NCBI GenBank assembly: GCA_964188305.1
Contig: OZ076889.1
Strand: one strand, 5' to 3'
DNA length: 64,000 nt
Source: Podarcis bocagei
Lineage: Eukaryota
Notes under the pieces: model-generated
What the model was told of the DNA's origin: nothing
Seen by the model: the letters and a program-made list of their open reading frames with translations, nothing else
Database searches by the model: none
Part shown: positions 8,942-33,967 of the stretch, one piece after another
Layout: every line of letters starts with the position of its first letter
How positions within the stretch are numbered: the stretch's first letter is position 1
Made by a program: the position numbers and the translations under genes

Positions 8942-9073
8942 NNNNNNNNNNNNNNNNNNNNNNNNNNNNNNNNNNNNNNNNNNNNNNNNNNNNNNNNNNN
9001 NNNNNNNNNNNNNNNNNNNNNNNNNNNNNNNNNNNNNNNNNNNNNNNNNNNNNNNNNNNNNNNNNNNNNNNNN
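8942..9073. other. Assembly gap (132 N)
   Basis: Run of n characters. Confidence 1.
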
Positions 9074-18053: not shown

Positions 18054-18319
18054 GGGACGCGGGTGGTGCTGTGAGTTAAACCACAGAGCCTAGGACTTGC
18101 CGATCAGAAGGTTGGCGGTTCGAATCCCCGCAACGGGGTGAGCTCCTGTTGTTCAGTCCCTGCTCCTGCCAACCTAGCAGTGCAAAAGCACGTCAAAGTG
18201 CAAGTAGATAAATAGGTACCGCTCCAGCAGGAAGGTAAACGGCGCTGCTCTGCTTCGCTAGAAGTGGCTTAGTCATGCTGGCCACATGACCCGGAAGCTG
18301 TACGCTGGCTCCCTCGGCC
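18054..18319 (+). mobile_element. Sauria SINE, 3'-truncated
   Basis: gggacgcgggtggtgctg head and B-box; no ACCTTT tail. Confidence 0.85.
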
Positions 18320-21142: not shown

Positions 21143-21433
21143 TGTTTTTGTTTAGTTGTTTAGTCGTGTCCGACTCTTCGTGACCCCATGGAGCAGAGCA
21201 CGCCAGGCACACCTGTCTTCCACTGCCTCCCTCATGCTGGTAGCTTCGAGAACACTGTCCAAACATCTCGTCCTCTGTCGTCCCCTTCTCCTTGTGCCCT
21301 CAATCTTTCTCAACATCAGGGTCTTTTCCAGGGAGTCTTCTCTTCTCATGAGGTGGCCAAAGTACTGGAGCCTCAGCTTCACGATCTGTCCTTCCAGTGA
21401 GCACTCAGGGCTGATTTCCTTAAGAATGGATAC

Positions 21434-22186
21434 TGTCAGGGGTTTAGGTGCAGAGGCACGGGCAAGGGAGGAAACAGAGAGCGAAGGGGAGGAGACAGAG
21501 GAAAGGATGAGTGATGACGACGACCCGAGATCTCCCAGTCTTTCCAGTGAATCAGAGGATTCACAGAAAGGAGCACCAGTGGCCAGGGCAAGAGGGGAGT
21601 CTAGGGAGGCACCCCAGGAAGATAGAGCCAGAGGAGACTCAGGGGGAAGCAGCTGGGAATCGGGACCAGCGTCACCGCCAGGAAGCAGGGAAGAGGAAAG
21701 GACCCAGGGGGGAAGCGCTGGCAGCTCACCACAGGAGGGAGGGCAGGAGTCAGGAGTGGCCACACCTCCATCGGGGAGCGAAGAAACGGTTAAGAGGAAA
21801 GTGGAAGGTTGGGCGCGCGCGCCAAGTTCAAATGCAGAGGAAGGCGGCGCAGTGAGCAGCCCCGAAAGGGAACCAGGTCCTAAAGCCCGGCGCAAGGAGG
21901 CAGAAGGGTCCGGGTCAGCGTCAGAAGAATCCCGGAAGGAAGAAGCCCCAGGGGGTAGAGGGACCCAGAGGAGGACAGTCAGGAGGAAAAGGTGGAGCAA
22001 GGCTAGGATATTAAGTTGGTGCGCACGGGGCGGAGACTCAGACGGAGCCTCGCCGATCTAGCTAGTAGACGTAGAGTTGCAGACAGCAGCGTGAGAATGG
22101 AAACTGTAATTCAATAAAGACTTTTACTTGATGACCGCTGGCTAGCGTGATCCTCTGTGAGCTAGGATCTTGAAGCAGCTCTGACA
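21434..22186 (+). repeat. 5' LTR (753 bp)
   Basis: No difference from 27226-27978 found by eye; TATTAA at 22009-22014, AATAAA at 22113-22118. Confidence 0.96.
22009..22050 (+). promoter_or_regulatory. Predicted LTR core promoter (TATA-like box and initiator) and transcript start near 22040-22041
   Basis: TATTAA lies 31 nt upstream of an Inr-like CTCA|GAC; the start region is complementary to the PBS position. Confidence 0.55.
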
Positions 22187-22188
22187 GT

Positions 22189-22198
22189 AGGCTCCGTC
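22189..22198 (+). promoter_or_regulatory. Primer binding site, self-priming type
   Basis: AGGCTCCGTC is the exact reverse complement of GACGGAGCCT (22041-22050); there is no TGG tRNA-type start after the LTR. Confidence 0.7.
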
Positions 22199-22277
22199 AC
22201 GACATTGTGGGCATCTGCAGCCTCGAGGAGGGGAGAGAAACAGGCGCCCACTAGCGAGCTCACGAACGGCAGGAGAC

Positions 22278-23342
22278 ATGACGGCTGAGCAGCAGATAGA
22301 GGACCTCAGAAAAGCAGTGGCACAACTGAACGCCGAGGTTCTCGCATCCAGGAAGAGAGAGGACGAGGCAGCTGCCGCCTGCAGGGATCTCCAGGTCAGG
22401 TTAGACGTACTGGCAAAGCAACCACCCCGGCAGGAGGGAATTGGGTTGGCGAGACGGACAGGCGGGCTGCTCTCTCACTTCGATGGGAACCTGCAACAGT
22501 ATCCCAACTTTAGAGCCGACGTACTGTGCGCACTGCAACTGTTGCATAAAGACTTTAGAGATGAACAGGAGAGAGTGGGGTTCATCATGTCCCATCTGCA
22601 TGGGGAGGCGAAAGCATGGTTGCGCAATTTATGGAGAGATAACGATCCGGCGCTCCAGAATGCGGATGCCTTTATTAAAGCGATGGATGGGTGTTTCTTA
22701 TCAAGTATTGACATTGATCTTGCACGGAAGGAGGTGCATGGGCTGAGACAAGGGAGGGCCAGCGTCAGACAGTATCATGCACGCTTTTTCGCTTTGGTCA
22801 GCGCCCTGGAATGGGACAGAGATTCGGCTCCTGTAAGAGACCTCTTTTGGGAAGGACTGCACAACTCGATTAAAGATGAGATAGCGAGGGGGGAGAGACC
22901 CCGAACCACCCAGGAGGTCGTTCAGAGGGCACTGGCCGTGGGGGTGAGGCTGGAAGGACGTCCGTGGAGCAAGGACGAAGGACGTGGAGGGCGCGAACCA
23001 GCCGGGGGCCCCTCCTTCTTTCCCAGAGAAGCAGCGCGAGCGCAATCCACGCCTCCGCCAGGAGGAGGAGCCGAACCTATGGAGGTTGGAGGTGCAAGGG
23101 CTCAGTCAGCAACCAGAGCCCTAGCACCGGCAGCCGTGCAGGCGAAGCCTCCTAGAGGGACCAGGAAGTGTTACGTCTGTGAGCAGCCAGGACATATGGC
23201 GAAAGAGTGTCCCCAGAGGCCCCACAAGCTTACTGCAGCCTCAGCAATGGTGACTGCAGCAACGCAGCAGGGAGGACCACAGCAGGGAAACGACGATGTC
23301 TGGCTGGAGGAAGAGGCACTGGGGCCCAGCCAGACGTGTTAG
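22278..23342 (+). CDS. gag: Gag (coiled coil, capsid, CCHC nucleocapsid), 354 aa
   Basis: FDGN, LHGEAKAW, LRQGRASVRQY (major homology region-like), EPMEVG, and zinc knuckle CYVCEQPGHMAKEC. Confidence 0.93.
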   Translation: MTAEQQIEDLRKAVAQLNAEVLASRKREDEAAAACRDLQVRLDVLAKQPPRQEGIGLARRTGGLLSHFDGNLQQYPNFRADVLCALQLLHKDFRDEQERVGFIMSHLHGEAKAWLRNLWRDNDPALQNADAFIKAMDGCFLSSIDIDLARKEVHGLRQGRASVRQYHARFFALVSALEWDRDSAPVRDLFWEGLHNSIKDEIARGERPRTTQEVVQRALAVGVRLEGRPWSKDEGRGGREPAGGPSFFPREAARAQSTPPPGGGAEPMEVGGARAQSATRALAPAAVQAKPPRGTRKCYVCEQPGHMAKECPQRPHKLTAASAMVTAATQQGGPQQGNDDVWLEEEALGPSQTC

Positions 23343-23357
23343 TGACGCAGTCCCCAG
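23285..23357 (+). promoter_or_regulatory. -1 programmed ribosomal frameshift signal (slippery heptamer and pseudoknot)
   Basis: G GGA AAC in the gag frame (23285-23291); stem 1 is 23298-23307 with 23326-23335; stem 2 is 23319-23324 with 23352-23357; pol is in the -1 frame. Confidence 0.85.
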
Positions 23358-26300
23358 AAATTTTACAGCCAGTGAACCCCCTCCCGCCCAAACCAGTAGT
23401 GAGGCTCACAGCATCTCTCCAGCTGCCCAATGGAATCACCATGGACGTACCAATCACCATCGACTCCGGCAGCAACGCGGACTTTATAGGGCAGGAATTT
23501 GTCGACAGGCACGCTGTGCAGTTGCTGCCGGCCACACTGCCCCTGCAGGTTGTCACGGTGGATGGCAGGGAGCTGCTAGGGGGGCAAGTGGTGAAGCAGA
23601 CGCCACCAATGGTGATGCGACTTGGGAATCACAGGGAAGTCATCAGCTTCAACGTCACTCAACTGTCTGACACGCCCATTGTATTGGGTATGAGTTGGCT
23701 GGACAAGCACAGCCCAACGATGGCTTGGTTCCAGAGGCAGCTGGTCTTCGGCTCTTCCTTTTGTGCTGAACACTGCATCGTACCCAGGCAGGAAGGAGAG
23801 GAAGAGGAGTCACAGCTGCTGCTAGGCACGCTGCAAGCGATTCCCCACAAGTACGCAGAATTTCTGGAAGTTTTCTGCGAGAAGGAGGCGGACAGGCTAC
23901 CCCCTCACAGACCATATGACTGCAAAATTGACCTGCTGCCGGGGGCGGCGCTGCCTAAAGGGAAGCTGTATTCCATGTCTGAGGACGAACTGCAGGAACT
24001 CAAAGACTTCATCGATCATAATTTGGAGCGCGGTTTCATCTGGGAGTCTAAGGCAGTGGGAGGCAGTCCTGTATTCTTTGTTAAGAAGCGAGACACGCCC
24101 CAAAAAAGACTCGTAGTGGATTACAGGATTTTGAACAGTGTGACCAAGCCGTCGGACTTCCCCATGCCCCGCATCGACGACCTCCTGGCGAAGGTACGGA
24201 AGGGAAAGGTGTTCACCAAGTTGGACCTGCGGGGGGCGTACAACCTCATTCGCATGCGGGAAGGTGATGAGTGGAAGACAGCCATGTTCACGCCACTGGG
24301 TACCTACGAATACAGAGTTATGCCTTTTGGACTGCAAAATGGCGCTCACGTTTTTCAAGCATTTATGCATCACGTGTTGGCGGGACTTCTCTACAAGACG
24401 TGCGTCTGTTTCTTGGATGACATCCTGATCTTTTCGGAGTCGCAGCAAGAACATGACAAGCACGTCAAGGAAGTGCTGGGCAGGCTAAAGCAACACAGGC
24501 TCTACGCCAAGCTGGAGAAGTGCCAATTTGACGTGCCGGAGGTGGATTTTCTGGGCTACAAGCTGTCTGCCAAGGGGCTCGCCATGGACAGCGCCAAGGT
24601 TCGAGCGGTGTTGGATTGGAAGAGCCCACGCAACCGGAAGGAGGTCCAACGGTTTGTCGGCTTTGCGAACTTCTATCGCAAGTTTATCAAGGGCTTCGCG
24701 ATGCAGACGGCGGCCATCACTGACACCCTTAGCTCCAAGAAGAAGAAGTTCATCTGGACAGAGCAGGCGGAGCAGTCCTTTCAGGCCCTCAAGCGTCTCT
24801 TCGCGTCGGAAGAGCAGCTGCTTCATGTCAACCCCAGCATGCCGATGAGGGTGGAGACAGACGCTTCGGACAGAGCAGTGGGGGCGGTCCTGCTGCAGAA
24901 GGACCCGCAGGGCGTGTGGCGGCCGGGAGCGTTTTACTCCAGGAAGCTCAGCAAGTCCGAGCAGAACTACACCATATGGGACAGGGAGTTGCTGGCCATT
25001 CATGCAGCGTTCAAGGCGTGGAGGCACTTTCTGATCGGCGCCAAGCACACGGTGCAGGTTTGCACGGACCACAAGAATCTGGAACACTGGCGCACGGCAC
25101 AGTTCCTGAACCAGAGGCAGATACGTTGGGCTGAGTTCTTTGCGGACTTCGACTTCCGAATAGAGTATGTCCCGGGGGACACCAACATCATGGCAGACGC
25201 TCTCTCCCGCAAGCCACAGTATCTGGAGGACGCAACACCAGCGGCCGCCATGCACATCTTTGCACCGACAGTGTGGGCGTGCGCCGCGGCGACCGTGGAC
25301 CTAGAGGCGGTGCGGCGAGCGTTGCAGGGGGACTCCTTCGCACAAACGAAGATGGCAGAGGTGCGAGGGGGCAAGGCAGCGGCCGACGGTTTCCAGCTAC
25401 GAGATGGCTTGCTCATCCGTAAAGGGGCCATCTACGTGCCGGGTGACGAACTTCGAGCCAAGGTGCTACAGCAGCTGCACGACGCACCCACGGCCGGGCA
25501 CTTTGGCAAGGAGAAGACGGTGGAATTAGTAGCCAGGGATTTCTGGTGGCCTGGAATGAGAGGGGAGGTCGCAGACTACGTAGCGAGGTGTGACACCTGC
25601 CAGAGGGCAAAGCCGGTGCACAAACCGCCGGCTGGACTGTTGGAGCCGCTGCAAACTCCGGTCGAACCTTGGGAAAGGGTGGCCCTGGACTTTGTCACGG
25701 ATCTGCCCAGCTCAAGGGGCAAGACGGCAGTGTTGGTGGTGGTGGACCTGTTCTCCAAGATGGCGCATTTCATTCCGTGTGCTAAGGTGGCCACGGCGGA
25801 GCAAACCGCCAAACTGTTCATAGACCACGTGTTCAAGGTTCACGGTCTGCCACGGTCTATTCTGTCCGACCGCGGGCGGCAGTTCATCTCGAACTTCTGG
25901 CAGAAACTGATGGGCTTCCTAAACGTCAAGATCAATCTGGCGTCGGCGAGACACCCGCAGACCAACGGGCAAGCGGAGCGAGCCAATGCCATCATGCAGC
26001 AGTACCTGAGATGTTATGCAAACCAACAGCCTGCGACGTGGGTAGATTACCTGCCGCTTGCAGAGTTTGCCTACAACAACACGAAGCACGTATCCACGGG
26101 CGTCACGCCGTTCTTCGCCAACAACGGGCGGCACCCTAGAACCTTTCCGGGACTGGAATGCAGGGGAGAAGGGGAGCCGCAGTCAGCAGATGCGTTCGCG
26201 TCGGAGCTGCAGGAAGTCCACGATCAGCTGAGGCGCCACCTGGAGCTGGCTAAACACGCATACAAGGTACAAGCGGACAAACACAGAAGGGTTGGCGAAG

Positions 26301-26908
26301 AGCTCCACGTGGGAGACTGGGTCTGGTTAGCAGCCCACGCAGTGCCGGCCAGGTCGTTGGCCAAGAAGAAACTAGGGCATAAACAACTGGGGCCCTACCA
26401 AGTCGAAGAGCAGGTCAACCCGGTGGCTTTCAGGCTGGCGCTTCCGGAGGGTTCCAGAATGCATCCGGTGTTCCACAGATCGGTGCTCACTCCCTACAAG
26501 GCACCGCACAGGTTCCAGGAACCCGGAACGGCGCCGAGTCCACTCAGAGAAGGAACGGGGCACGCGGGAGTAGCACAGGAGGAGCGCATCAACGAAGTCA
26601 CGGAGATTTTGGACTCCAGATGGGGGGAAGAGGGAGTAGAATACTTTCTCGCCAGGGAGGGCACCCCGGCCAGTGCGAACAGCTGGGTGCCGGGCTACGC
26701 TTTAGACGAACCTCTGCTCAAAGACGAGTTTCATGCCCTCTTCCCACATAGACCTATGCCAGCAGACTTTTTCGACGACTGGCTTTTCACGCCCACGCTT
26801 TCGGACAGCACGTTCAGGGGGTTCGACTCGGACGAGGAACCAACACGAGACGTCCGTTCCCCGGAGGGGTCACCCTCGGGATCTGTCTCAGAACCCTCGT
26901 ATTGGTGA
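23291..26908 (+). CDS. pol: Pol (protease, RT, RNase H, integrase, chromodomain-like), expressed as ~1543-aa Gag-Pol by -1 frameshift
   Basis: IDSGS protease; KLDLRGAY, MPFGL and FLDD in RT; TDAS, ELLAI, TDHKNL and ADALSR in RNase H; HHCC, D-D-E and GPY in integrase; EVTEILDSR...SWVP chromodomain-like region. Confidence 0.95.
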   Translation, partial: RRCLAGGRGTGAQPDVLVTQSPEILQPVNPLPPKPVVRLTASLQLPNGITMDVPITIDSGSNADFIGQEFVDRHAVQLLPATLPLQVVTVDGRELLGGQVVKQTPPMVMRLGNHREVISFNVTQLSDTPIVLGMSWLDKHSPTMAWFQRQLVFGSSFCAEHCIVPRQEGEEEESQLLLGTLQAIPHKYAEFLEVFCEKEADRLPPHRPYDCKIDLLPGAALPKGKLYSMSEDELQELKDFIDHNLERGFIWESKAVGGSPVFFVKKRDTPQKRLVVDYRILNSVTKPSDFPMPRIDDLLAKVRKGKVFTKLDLRGAYNLIRMREGDEWKTAMFTPLGTYEYRVMPFGLQNGAHVFQAFMHHVLAGLLYKTCVCFLDDILIFSESQQEHDKHVKEVLGRLKQHRLYAKLEKCQFDVPEVDFLGYKLSAKGLAMDSAKVRAVLDWKSPRNRKEVQRFVGFANFYRKFIKGFAMQTAAITDTLSSKKKKFIWTEQAEQSFQALKRLFASEEQLLHVNPSMPMRVETDASDRAVGAVLLQKDPQGVWRPGAFYSRKLSKSEQNYTIWDRELLAIHAAFKAWRHFLIGAKHTVQVCTDHKNLEHWRTAQFLNQRQIRWAEFFADFDFRIEYVPGDTNIMADALSRKPQYLEDATPAAAMHIFAPTVWACAAATVDLEAVRRALQGDSFAQTKMAEVRGGKAAADGFQLRDGLLIRKGAIYVPGDELRAKVLQQLHDAPTAGHFGKEKTVELVARDFWWPGMRGEVADYVARCDTCQRAKPVHKPPAGLLEPLQTPVEPWERVALDFVTDLPSSRGKTAVLVVVDLFSKMAHFIPCAKVATAEQTAKLFIDHVFKVHGLPRSILSDRGRQFISNFWQKLMGFLNVKINLASARHPQTNGQAERANAIMQQYLRCYANQQPATWVDYLPLAEFAYNNTKHVSTGVTPFFANNGRHPRTFPGLECRGEGEPQSADAFASELQEVHDQLRRHLELAKHAYKVQADKHRRVGEELHVGDWVWLAAHAVPARSLAKKKLGHKQLGPYQVEEQVNPVAFRLALPEGSRMHPVFHRSVLTPYKAPHRFQEPGTAPSPLREGTGHAGVAQEERINEVTEILDSRWGEEGVEYFLAREGTPASANSWVPGYALDEPLLKDEFHALFPHRPMPADFFDDWLFTPTLSDSTFRGFDSDEEPTRDVRSPEGSPSGSVSEPSYW

Positions 26909-27853
26909 GACGATAGGCCGGAGGAGCAGTTCCGCAGGAAGTGGCTGGACTGTTCCGGCCGAGCAACGCCGCCTGGAGGAAGTGCGGGAGAGACGGACAT
27001 GGACATTTTCGGGGACGACCCTGGTTTCGAGCACGGCGGCACAGAGATGGAAGAGGAGGTGACTGTCGTCAACGAGAGCAGAGAGGAAGACCTGGAAGAG
27101 TTCCGCTGGAGGCCTGCCACGGGAAGCGACCGATATCCGACGTTCGTCCCTTTGCAACAGCAGCCCCCAGCTCCAGCACCGGAAGGAGGGGAGGGGGGAC
27201 TGGGGGGCTTCGAGGGGGGGATGGATGTCAGGGGTTTAGGTGCAGAGGCACGGGCAAGGGAGGAAACAGAGAGCGAAGGGGAGGAGACAGAGGAAAGGAT
27301 GAGTGATGACGACGACCCGAGATCTCCCAGTCTTTCCAGTGAATCAGAGGATTCACAGAAAGGAGCACCAGTGGCCAGGGCAAGAGGGGAGTCTAGGGAG
27401 GCACCCCAGGAAGATAGAGCCAGAGGAGACTCAGGGGGAAGCAGCTGGGAATCGGGACCAGCGTCACCGCCAGGAAGCAGGGAAGAGGAAAGGACCCAGG
27501 GGGGAAGCGCTGGCAGCTCACCACAGGAGGGAGGGCAGGAGTCAGGAGTGGCCACACCTCCATCGGGGAGCGAAGAAACGGTTAAGAGGAAAGTGGAAGG
27601 TTGGGCGCGCGCGCCAAGTTCAAATGCAGAGGAAGGCGGCGCAGTGAGCAGCCCCGAAAGGGAACCAGGTCCTAAAGCCCGGCGCAAGGAGGCAGAAGGG
27701 TCCGGGTCAGCGTCAGAAGAATCCCGGAAGGAAGAAGCCCCAGGGGGTAGAGGGACCCAGAGGAGGACAGTCAGGAGGAAAAGGTGGAGCAAGGCTAGGA
27801 TATTAAGTTGGTGCGCACGGGGCGGAGACTCAGACGGAGCCTCGCCGATCTAG
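26909..27853 (+). CDS. In-frame continuation of pol / ORF3 spanning PPT and U3 (314 codons; first ATG at 26999 gives 284 aa), acidic low-complexity protein with a basic cluster
   Basis: Same frame as pol, separated by one TGA (26906-26908); ends at TAG 27851-27853, 51 nt before AATAAA. Confidence 0.45.
   Translation, partial: DDRPEEQFRRKWLDCSGRATPPGGSAGETDMDIFGDDPGFEHGGTEMEEEVTVVNESREEDLEEFRWRPATGSDRYPTFVPLQQQPPAPAPEGGEGGLGGFEGGMDVRGLGAEARAREETESEGEETEERMSDDDDPRSPSLSSESEDSQKGAPVARARGESREAPQEDRARGDSGGSSWESGPASPPGSREEERTQGGSAGSSPQEGGQESGVATPPSGSEETVKRKVEGWARAPSSNAEEGGAVSSPEREPGPKARRKEAEGSGSASEESRKEEAPGGRGTQRRTVRRKRWSKARILSWCARGGDSDGASPI
27212..27225 (+). promoter_or_regulatory. Polypurine tract
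   Basis: gagggggggatgga directly before the 3' LTR TG. Confidence 0.85.
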
Positions 27854-27978
27854 CTAGTAGACGTAGAGTTGCAGACAGCAGCGTGAGAATGGAAACTGTA
27901 ATTCAATAAAGACTTTTACTTGATGACCGCTGGCTAGCGTGATCCTCTGTGAGCTAGGATCTTGAAGCAGCTCTGACA
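27226..27978 (+). repeat. 3' LTR (753 bp)
   Basis: Copy of 21434-22186; AATAAA at 27905-27910. Confidence 0.96.
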
Positions 27979-28478
27979 GATACGTTTGATCTTCTTGCAG
28001 TCCATGGGACTCTCAAGAGTCTCCTCCAGCACCAGAATTCAAAAGCATCAATTCTTCGGCGATCAGCCTTCTTTTTGGTCCAGCTCTCACTTCCATACAT
28101 CACTACTCAGAAAACCATAGCTTTAACTATACGGACCCTTGTCAGCAAGGTGATGTCTCTGCTTTTTAAGATGCTGTCTAGGTTTGTCATCGCTTTTCTC
28201 CCCAAGGAGCAGGTGTCTCTTGATTTCGTGACTGCTGTCACCATCTGCAGTAATCTTGGAGCCCAGGAAAGTAAAATCTCTTACTGCCTCCATTTCTTCC
28301 CCTTCTATTTGCCAGGAGGTGATGGGCCCAGTGCCCATGATCTTAGTTTTTTTGATGTTGAGCTTCAGACCATATTTTGCTGTCTCTCTTTTCAACCTTA
28401 TTAAGAGGTTCTTTAATTCCTCCTCAGTTTCTGCTATCAAAGTTGTGTCATCTGCATATCAGAGGTTGTTGATATTTC

Positions 28479-28883
28479 TGTTGGGATACTGCTGGGGAGA
28501 TGGGGGCATCAGGCAGGCCCCCAGCTGGCTCCAGCCTTGCTAGCAGCCGGGCGATCTCCAGTACAGCATCAATCAGTGACACGAGCCTCAGATAGGTTTA
28601 GAGACTCGGCATGCTCTTATCAGCAGAGTGAATAAATCTTCTCACAGTGGAAGAGGCAGACAAAGTCATGTGTAAGCATTATTTACAAGCGTTTATTCAG
28701 CATAGTTCAGCAACAAAGGAAAAACATGTCTGCTTCCCTTCGTGTCCAAGCACAACAGCATCAACACAAAAGCAATATACAAACGGAAGTTCCCAGCAAG
28801 CCTGTGCTGGAAGTAAACAGGCATGTGACACACAACAGTCATGCCTGTTCCCTTTTAAGGTAGAACGGAACTATATCCTAACA
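28479..28883 (-). mobile_element. Solo LTR of a second, unrelated family (405 bp) inserted in Bov-B
   Basis: TGTTGGGATA...TATCCTAACA (9/10 inverted repeat); flanks atttc/gtttc (4/5 TSD match); removing it rejoins Bov-B IAGRN|INNL. Orientation is tentative, from a minus-strand AATAAA at 28692-28697. Confidence 0.75.
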
Positions 28884-29837
28884 GTTTCTTCCGGCAATCT
28901 TAATTCCGGTTTGGGATTCATCCAATCCAGTCTTTCGCATGATGAATTCTGCATATAAGTTAAATAAGCAGGGAGACAAAATACAGCCTTGTCGTACTCC
29001 TTTCCCAATTTTGAACCAATCAGTTGTTCCATATCCAGTTCTAACTGTAGCTTCTTGTCCCACATAGAGATTTCTCAGGAGACAGATGAGGTGATCAAGC
29101 ACTCCCATTTCTTTAAGAACTTGCCATAGTTTGCTGTGGTCGACACAGTCAAAGGCTTTTGCATAGTCAATGAAGCAGAAGTAGATGTCTTTCTGGAACT
29201 CTCTAGCTTTCTCTGAAATCCAGTGCATGTTTGCAATTTGGTCTCTGGTTCCTCTGCCCCTTCGAAATCCAGCTTGCACTTCTGGGAGTTCTCGGTCCAC
29301 ATACTGCTTAGGCCTGCCTTGTAGAATTTTAAGCATAACCTTGCTAGCGTGTGAAATGAGTGCAATTGTGCGGTAGTTGGAGCATTCTTTGGCACTGCCC
29401 TTCTTTGGGATTGGAATGTAGACTGATCTTCTCCAATCCTCTGGCCACTGCTGAGTTTTCCAAACTTGCTGGCATATTGAGTGTAGCACCTTAACAGCAC
29501 CATCTTTTAAAATTTTAAATAGTTCAGCTGGGATGTCATCACTTCCACTGGCCTTGTTATTAGCAGTGCTTTGTAAGGCCCATTTGACTTCACTCAAGGT
29601 CTGGCTCAAGGTCAGCAACCACACTACCTGGGGTGTATGAGACATCCATATCTTTCTGGTATAATTCCTCTGTGTATTCTTGCCACCTCTTCTTGATGTC
29701 TTCTGCTTCTGTTAGGTCCTTACCACTTTTGTTCTTTATTATGGTAATCTTTGCACAAAATGTTCCTTTCATAGCTCTAATTTTCTTGAACAGATCTCTG
29801 GTTTTTCCCATTTTATTGTTTTCCTCTATTTCTTTGC

Positions 29838-33595: not shown

Positions 33596-33967
33596 GGGAC
33601 GCGGGTGGCGCTGGGACGCGGGTGGCGCTGTGGGTAAAACCTCAGCGCCTAGGACTTGCCGATTGCATGGTCGGCGGTTTGAATCTCTGCGCCGGGGTGC
33701 GCTCCCGTCGTTCGGTCCCAGCGCCTGCCAACCTAGCAGTTTGAAAGCACCCCCGGGTGCAAGTAGATAAATAGGGACCGCTTACCAGCGGGAAGGTAAA
33801 CGGCGTTCCGTGTGCTGCGCTGGCTCGCCAGATGCAGCTTGTTACGCTGGCCACGTGACCCGGAAGTGTCTGCGGACAGCGCTGGCTCCCGGCCTATAGA
33901 GTGAGATGAGCGCACAACCCTAGAGTCTGTCAAGACTGGCCCATACGGGCAGGGGTACCTTTACCTT
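33596..33967 (+). mobile_element. Sauria SINE with duplicated 5' 17-mer
   Basis: TSD tactatattac at 33585-33595 and 33968-33978; (ACCTTT) tail. Confidence 0.9.

Follow-up and report, generated by a model that had tools for sequence, protein, structure and literature searches.

Two short segments of a lizard retrotransposon, at positions 22041-22050 and 22189-22198, likely constitute a cis-acting self-priming module of the Tf1/sushi type in a recently inserted chromovirus. The DNA analyzed was a 64-kb stretch from Podarcis bocagei (the window), and features lie on its plus strand unless stated otherwise. Downstream of the 5' LTR, which ends in CA, the sequence begins with a 2-nt spacer, GT (22187-22188), followed by a primer-binding site (PBS), AGGCTCCGTC (22189-22198), that lacks TGG. 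A complement search identified this PBS as the exact reverse complement of GACGGAGCCT (22041-22050), a putative self-primer corresponding to the predicted first bases of R. The pairing had been proposed in the first-pass annotation, and its letters and coordinates were correct, with an exact match over 10 nt. This is the longest complement that the post-LTR bases have within the LTR. The bases beside both 10-mers are mismatched (A/A and C/C on one side, C/T and G/G on the other); the duplex is therefore exactly 10 bp, and its energy is -19 kcal/mol. TGG was absent from 22187-22207, the 21 bases that follow the 5' LTR, and occurred earliest at 22208. A site for the tRNA 3' end (CCA) is therefore absent, as had also been claimed. 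No tRNA genes were detected by ARAGORN in the 64-kb window. Separately, the LTR/PBS junction (22185-22192) reads CA/GTAGGC, a passable splice-donor-like sequence overlapping the spacer and the PBS.

The element containing these segments (21434-27978) is an intact, sushi-like Ty3/gypsy retrotransposon. A direct repeat search with base-by-base comparison identified a 5' LTR (21434-22186) and a 3' LTR (27226-27978), each of 753 bp (TGTCAG...CTGACA), that were 100% identical, with 0 mismatches. The same 5 bases border both LTRs as a target-site duplication, GATAC (21429-21433 and 27979-27983), and a polypurine tract, GAGGGGGGGATGGA (27212-27225), adjoins the 3' LTR. With identical LTRs, a target duplication, and open gag and pol frames, the element was confirmed to be intact, as first described. 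The insertion is very recent, because the LTRs are identical and the frames intact. The family is apparently active. Searches with blastn and tblastn found no further copies elsewhere in the 64-kb window, and no Rfam families were found in 21434-23400. Three other features of the window were recorded. A 255-aa open reading frame on the minus strand (28878-29645), ~0.9 kb 3' of the element, matched RVT_1 (E = 6e-24) and is a fragment of another retroelement. Two 170-nt direct repeats, 82% identical and located one on each side of the element (18054-18223 and 33613-33782), are probably copies of an unrelated interspersed repeat. Positions 8942-9073 consist of 132 consecutive N (an assembly gap or masked sequence).

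The coding region has the organization of a chromovirus-type Ty3/gypsy element. The gag frame (22278-23342; 354 aa) contains Pfam matches to Ty3_capsid, Retrotrans_gag, DUF4939, and zf-CCHC, and PEG10 was its sole match in the PDB. The pol frame (23207-26908; 1233 aa), in -1 relative to gag, encodes protease (PR), reverse transcriptase (RT), RNase H, and integrase (IN; H2C2, rve, and SH3_Tf2-1), with a degenerate chromodomain. The Pfam matches along pol follow the Ty3/gypsy order PR-RT-RNase H-IN, and the best solved-structure relative of pol is Ty3 Gag-Pol. A slippery heptamer, G GGA AAC, identical to that of PEG10, lies in the gag frame at 23285-23291, within the gag/pol overlap; the gag stop codon is at 23340-23342. 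At the pol C-terminus, a Pfam Chromo match was obtained with E = 0.0075 and 16.6 bits, under the cut-off of 25.1. This region (26590-26740; pol residues ~1128-1180) could be aligned with chromodomains of related elements column by column. At the three positions of the aromatic cage it has N, R, and T, so that the cage is lost, and a Podarcis family with 61% identity keeps only the W among its cage residues. These residues suggest that the chromodomain of the lizard element probably no longer reads methyl-lysine.

The nearest pol proteins were from Podarcis muralis, with identities of 93, 90, 87, and 85%, followed by other Podarcis families at 61% and 51% and by Anolis at ~50%. Chromodomain-bearing elements of fish, frog, fungi, and charophytes showed 41-45% identity to pol. 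Homologues of gag (59-87% identity) were found as proteins of Logan contigs. A quick maximum-likelihood (ML) tree was constructed from 851 columns of RT-RH-IN, in which Tf1 and sushi-ichi sequences were not included. The lizard element grouped with squamate, fish, and frog sequences (SH-aLRT 97). In this tree the vertebrate clade was sister to fungal chromoviruses, with a support of 100 for the joint clade, and Closterium, Lolium, and Oryza fell outside the vertebrate and fungal clade. The grouping of these protein sequences places the lizard element in the vertebrate branch of the chromovirus cluster shared by fungi and vertebrates.

We then related the complement to the transcription signals of the LTR. 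The LTR contains a single TATA-like motif, TATTAA (22009-22014), an initiator-like sequence, TCAGACG (22038-22044), and a single poly(A) signal, AATAAA (22113-22118). The first-pass annotation had placed the complement of the PBS about 31 nt after TATTAA at an initiator-like sequence; it starts at 22041, 32 nt after the first T of TATTAA and inside TCAGACG, in agreement with that description. The predicted transcript start, and with it the U3/R border, would be A22040 or G22041. Counted from the first T of TATTAA, these bases lie at a distance of 31-32 nt, and the initiator pattern fits A22040 as +1. From the position of AATAAA, the R/U5 border would lie roughly at 22130-22145.

Next, relatives of the element were searched for the same layout. 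With the gag alignment, scans of viral contigs and of metagenomes gave no match; pol likewise gave none in viral contigs. A pol alignment retrieved 80 loci from metagenomes, distant relatives with 34-44% pol identity, which are probably fungal; the fungal clade that is sister to vertebrates in the ML tree is the one holding these loci. LTR-like repeat pairs were present in 28 of the 80. In several lineages the post-LTR bases complemented the locus's own LTR: over 13 nt in L019, over 12 nt in L044, L077, and L080, over 10 nt in L046, and at 11 of 12 positions in L041. The L014 group (L014, L021, L035, L052, and L065) showed 8 nt of exact complement, with 11 of 12 positions and one mismatch or G-U in L021 and L065. 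The spacers after the terminal CA in these fungal relatives were 0-2 nt long; that of L044 was GT, as in the lizard element, and those of L046 and L014 were CT. The target of the complement began 32-34 nt after the TATA box in L019, L044, L041, L077, and L080, compared with 32 nt in the lizard element. The primer sequences differed among these lineages and from that of the lizard element, and the complementarity has therefore been kept while the sequence changed. The same test gave nothing convincing in L029, L032, L011/L042, and L045/L071; several of these loci, whose LTRs are 89-95% alike, are older copies. Thus, conservation of the pairing across related families, which the first-pass annotation had suggested checking, was observed in several fungal lineages with differing primers and was unconvincing in the four sets just named.

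We estimated how often such a complement arises by coincidence. Of the 10-mers taken from other parts of the element and the window, 0.06-0.1% had a complement in the LTR. When random internal sites were sampled with five start offsets each, 2 of 500 gave an LTR complement of at least 10 nt, and the chance of a 10-nt complement at any LTR site was accordingly estimated at 0.004. Outside the element, 2 of 57,475 window positions complemented the 60 nt after the TATA (~3.5e-5 per position). Because the complement is rare and is located just after the LTR's one TATA-like motif, the joint coincidence of a 10-nt complement at CA+2 that targets the predicted transcript 5' end is of the order of 1e-4. 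These values bear on the explanation that the 10-nt complement is fortuitous and that the true primer is another molecule, such as a host tRNA half or internal tRNA fragment that pairs with 22187-22205. Half-tRNA and internal-tRNA primers are known from other LTR elements (PMC6317226), ~0.1% of positions have a 10-mer complement somewhere in the 753-bp LTR, and many features had been inspected in the first reading. However, the match lies exactly at the canonical CA+2 and targets the predicted transcript 5' end, a combination with the joint chance given above; the same geometry is found in relatives, TGG is lacking, and half-tRNA priming has been reported in Ty1/copia lineages, not in chromoviruses (PMC6317226). 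We therefore regard a fortuitous match as improbable.

A second explanation retains self-priming and derives the primer from an internal position of the transcript. With a transcription start upstream of 22040, the primer would be cut on both sides or carry a 5' tail, a variant of the Tf1 scheme. In favor of this reading, the transcript start is a prediction from sequence, and in L046 and the L014 group the 50 nt upstream of the complement contain no TATA. We nevertheless consider it unlikely, since the sole TATA-like box of the lizard LTR lies 32 nt upstream of the site, the initiator-like TCAGAC is at the site itself, and the same 32-34 nt spacing is found in four fungal lineages.

The predicted structure of the leader was consistent with pairing of the two 10-mers. 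In folds of RNA from 22040 or 22041 to 22205, 22240, or 22290, the pairing probability of primer and PBS was ~1.0. The MFE structures also contained, flanking the primer:PBS duplex, a 9-bp helix with one G-U, formed by a 5' arm (22072-22080) and a 3' arm (22175-22183) located in U5, 5 nt before the PBS. This predicted helix is a possible counterpart of the U5-IR helix. The first-pass annotation had proposed a different adjacent helix, 22055-22063 with 22160-22169 and one bulge. Its arms are present as letters, but the helix is absent from the RNAfold MFE structures, in which 22072-22080 with 22175-22183 is preferred together with a local hairpin (22149-22154/22164-22169). A central duplex and one flanking helix were thus predicted, and the third duplex of a three-duplex "pretzel" leader was not found by folding. 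The whole leader was no more stable than shuffled sequences (z = -1.2). A structural role, in which the paired 10-mers would form a long-range stem of the 5' leader (for packaging, dimerization, or translation control) and would not supply a primer, is improbable. Retroviral leaders do carry stems between U5 and PBS-flanking sequence, and folding predicts a closed R-U5 domain. In retroviruses, however, such stems lie beside the tRNA site and leave it in place, whereas here the paired 3' arm takes up the primer site itself and would leave no room for another primer; the 5' arm is located at the predicted end of the RNA, as it is in Tf1 (PMC10085805).

Two leader helices of the fungal loci L014 and L065 (25-32/113-122 and 35-39/106-112) join R with sequence downstream of the PBS, and both keep their pairing between the two loci. 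Their arms are GAAAGTAG/CTACTTTC versus AAATCGAA/TTCGATTT for the first and TGATT/AATCA versus TGACT/AGTCA for the second. These sequence changes represent natural covariation, in keeping with a "pretzel" leader.

Priming from the element's own 5' end in the manner of Tf1, the reading given by the first-pass annotation, was the best supported, in view of the exact complement, its canonical position, the family placement, and the geometry of the relatives. We infer the transcription start, RNase H cleavage, and priming itself from these features, as follows. Transcription would start ~31-32 nt after TATTAA, at A22040 or G22041, and the first 10 bases of R would fold back onto the PBS two bases beyond the 5' LTR. 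The element's RNase H, whose domain is present in pol, would cut the RNA immediately 3' of the duplex. The freed 3'-OH of U22050 would then prime minus-strand DNA through GT, U5, and R. Later steps would proceed as in other LTR elements, with strand transfer via R and plus-strand priming from the polypurine tract, and integrase would likewise remove the two extra bases.

The literature describes close precedents. Tf1 is primed by the first 11 nt of its own mRNA after an RNase H cut, and its type of leader combines a primer:PBS duplex with further flanking helices (PMC10085805 and PMC4600332). Self-priming is described as common in Tf1/sushi elements, vertebrate ones included (PMC10085805, PMC6317226, and PMC4600332, each citing Butler et al. 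2001), and active chromoviruses are on record in reptiles (PMC3670739). The lizard element resembles Tf1 and Tf2 of Schizosaccharomyces pombe, as well as Tj1, Tosmo, and Tcry1 of other fission yeasts, in that the PBS after the 5' LTR complements the predicted start of its own mRNA. It shares with Tf1/Tf2 the absence of a tRNA site, an LTR ending in CA, and the order PR-RT-RH-IN with a C-terminal chromodomain region. In contrast to Tf1, its duplex is 10 bp and not 11, its leader has one predicted flanking helix versus two, its chromodomain lacks the aromatic cage residues, and its host is an amniote. Its gag and pol are split by a -1 frameshift, unlike the single open reading frame or in-frame stop of Tf1/Tf2 and their relatives. 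The Tf1 mechanism has been shown experimentally, whereas that of the lizard element is deduced from its sequence.

Among vertebrate elements, the lizard element resembles sushi-ichi and other Tf1/sushi members in being a chromovirus-type Ty3/gypsy element and in having a gag akin to mammalian PEG10/RTL. For the sushi-ichi group, self-priming was likewise deduced from PBS-to-LTR complementarity, together with a "pretzel" leader (Butler et al. 2001, as cited in PMC10085805, PMC6317226, and PMC4600332). Unlike sushi-ichi, the lizard element belongs to a lacertid lizard host lineage, with its nearest proteins in Podarcis muralis. The fungal metagenomic chromoviruses (L019, L044, L077/L080, L046, and the L014 group) have the same arrangement, in which the terminal CA is followed after 0-2 nt by a PBS that complements their own LTR, but their pol is 34-44% identical and their primers are AT-rich, 8-13 nt long, and unrelated in sequence. 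In contrast to tRNA-primed LTR retrotransposons, the lizard element has no PBS starting with TGG within a few bases of its LTR.

Long open reading frames were also observed across U3 on both strands, at 26999-27853 (plus) and 26731-27792 (minus), with LTR copies at 21156-22061 (plus) and 21152-22000 (minus). The plus-strand frame has its ATG after pol and its stop codon just beyond the putative self-primer. No Pfam matches were found in the U3 frames. These frames may be compositional, because the region is strongly purine-skewed (GC skew of ~0.3, AT skew of up to 0.57).

Self-priming here is a known mechanism of which the element is a good example, and it is expected for Tf1/sushi elements; it is not new, because self-priming is a published hallmark of the group, vertebrates included. 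A broader reading is possible, though doubtful: a family that is mobile today would be the closest living, experimentally approachable amniote self-primer with a gag resembling the PEG10/RTL ancestor, and a 10-bp GC-rich duplex together with a junction doubling as a splice donor for the U3 frame could make it a variant, and not a straightforward copy, of the Tf1 scheme. With this analysis, U3, R, U5, and the PBS are cleanly annotated in a lizard retrotransposon family that is apparently active. The documented range of self-priming now includes an amniote element of very recent insertion, and the overall picture is unchanged. In practice, the lizard element is useful as a well-defined candidate in which the 5' end and cDNA intermediates could be mapped in a vertebrate.
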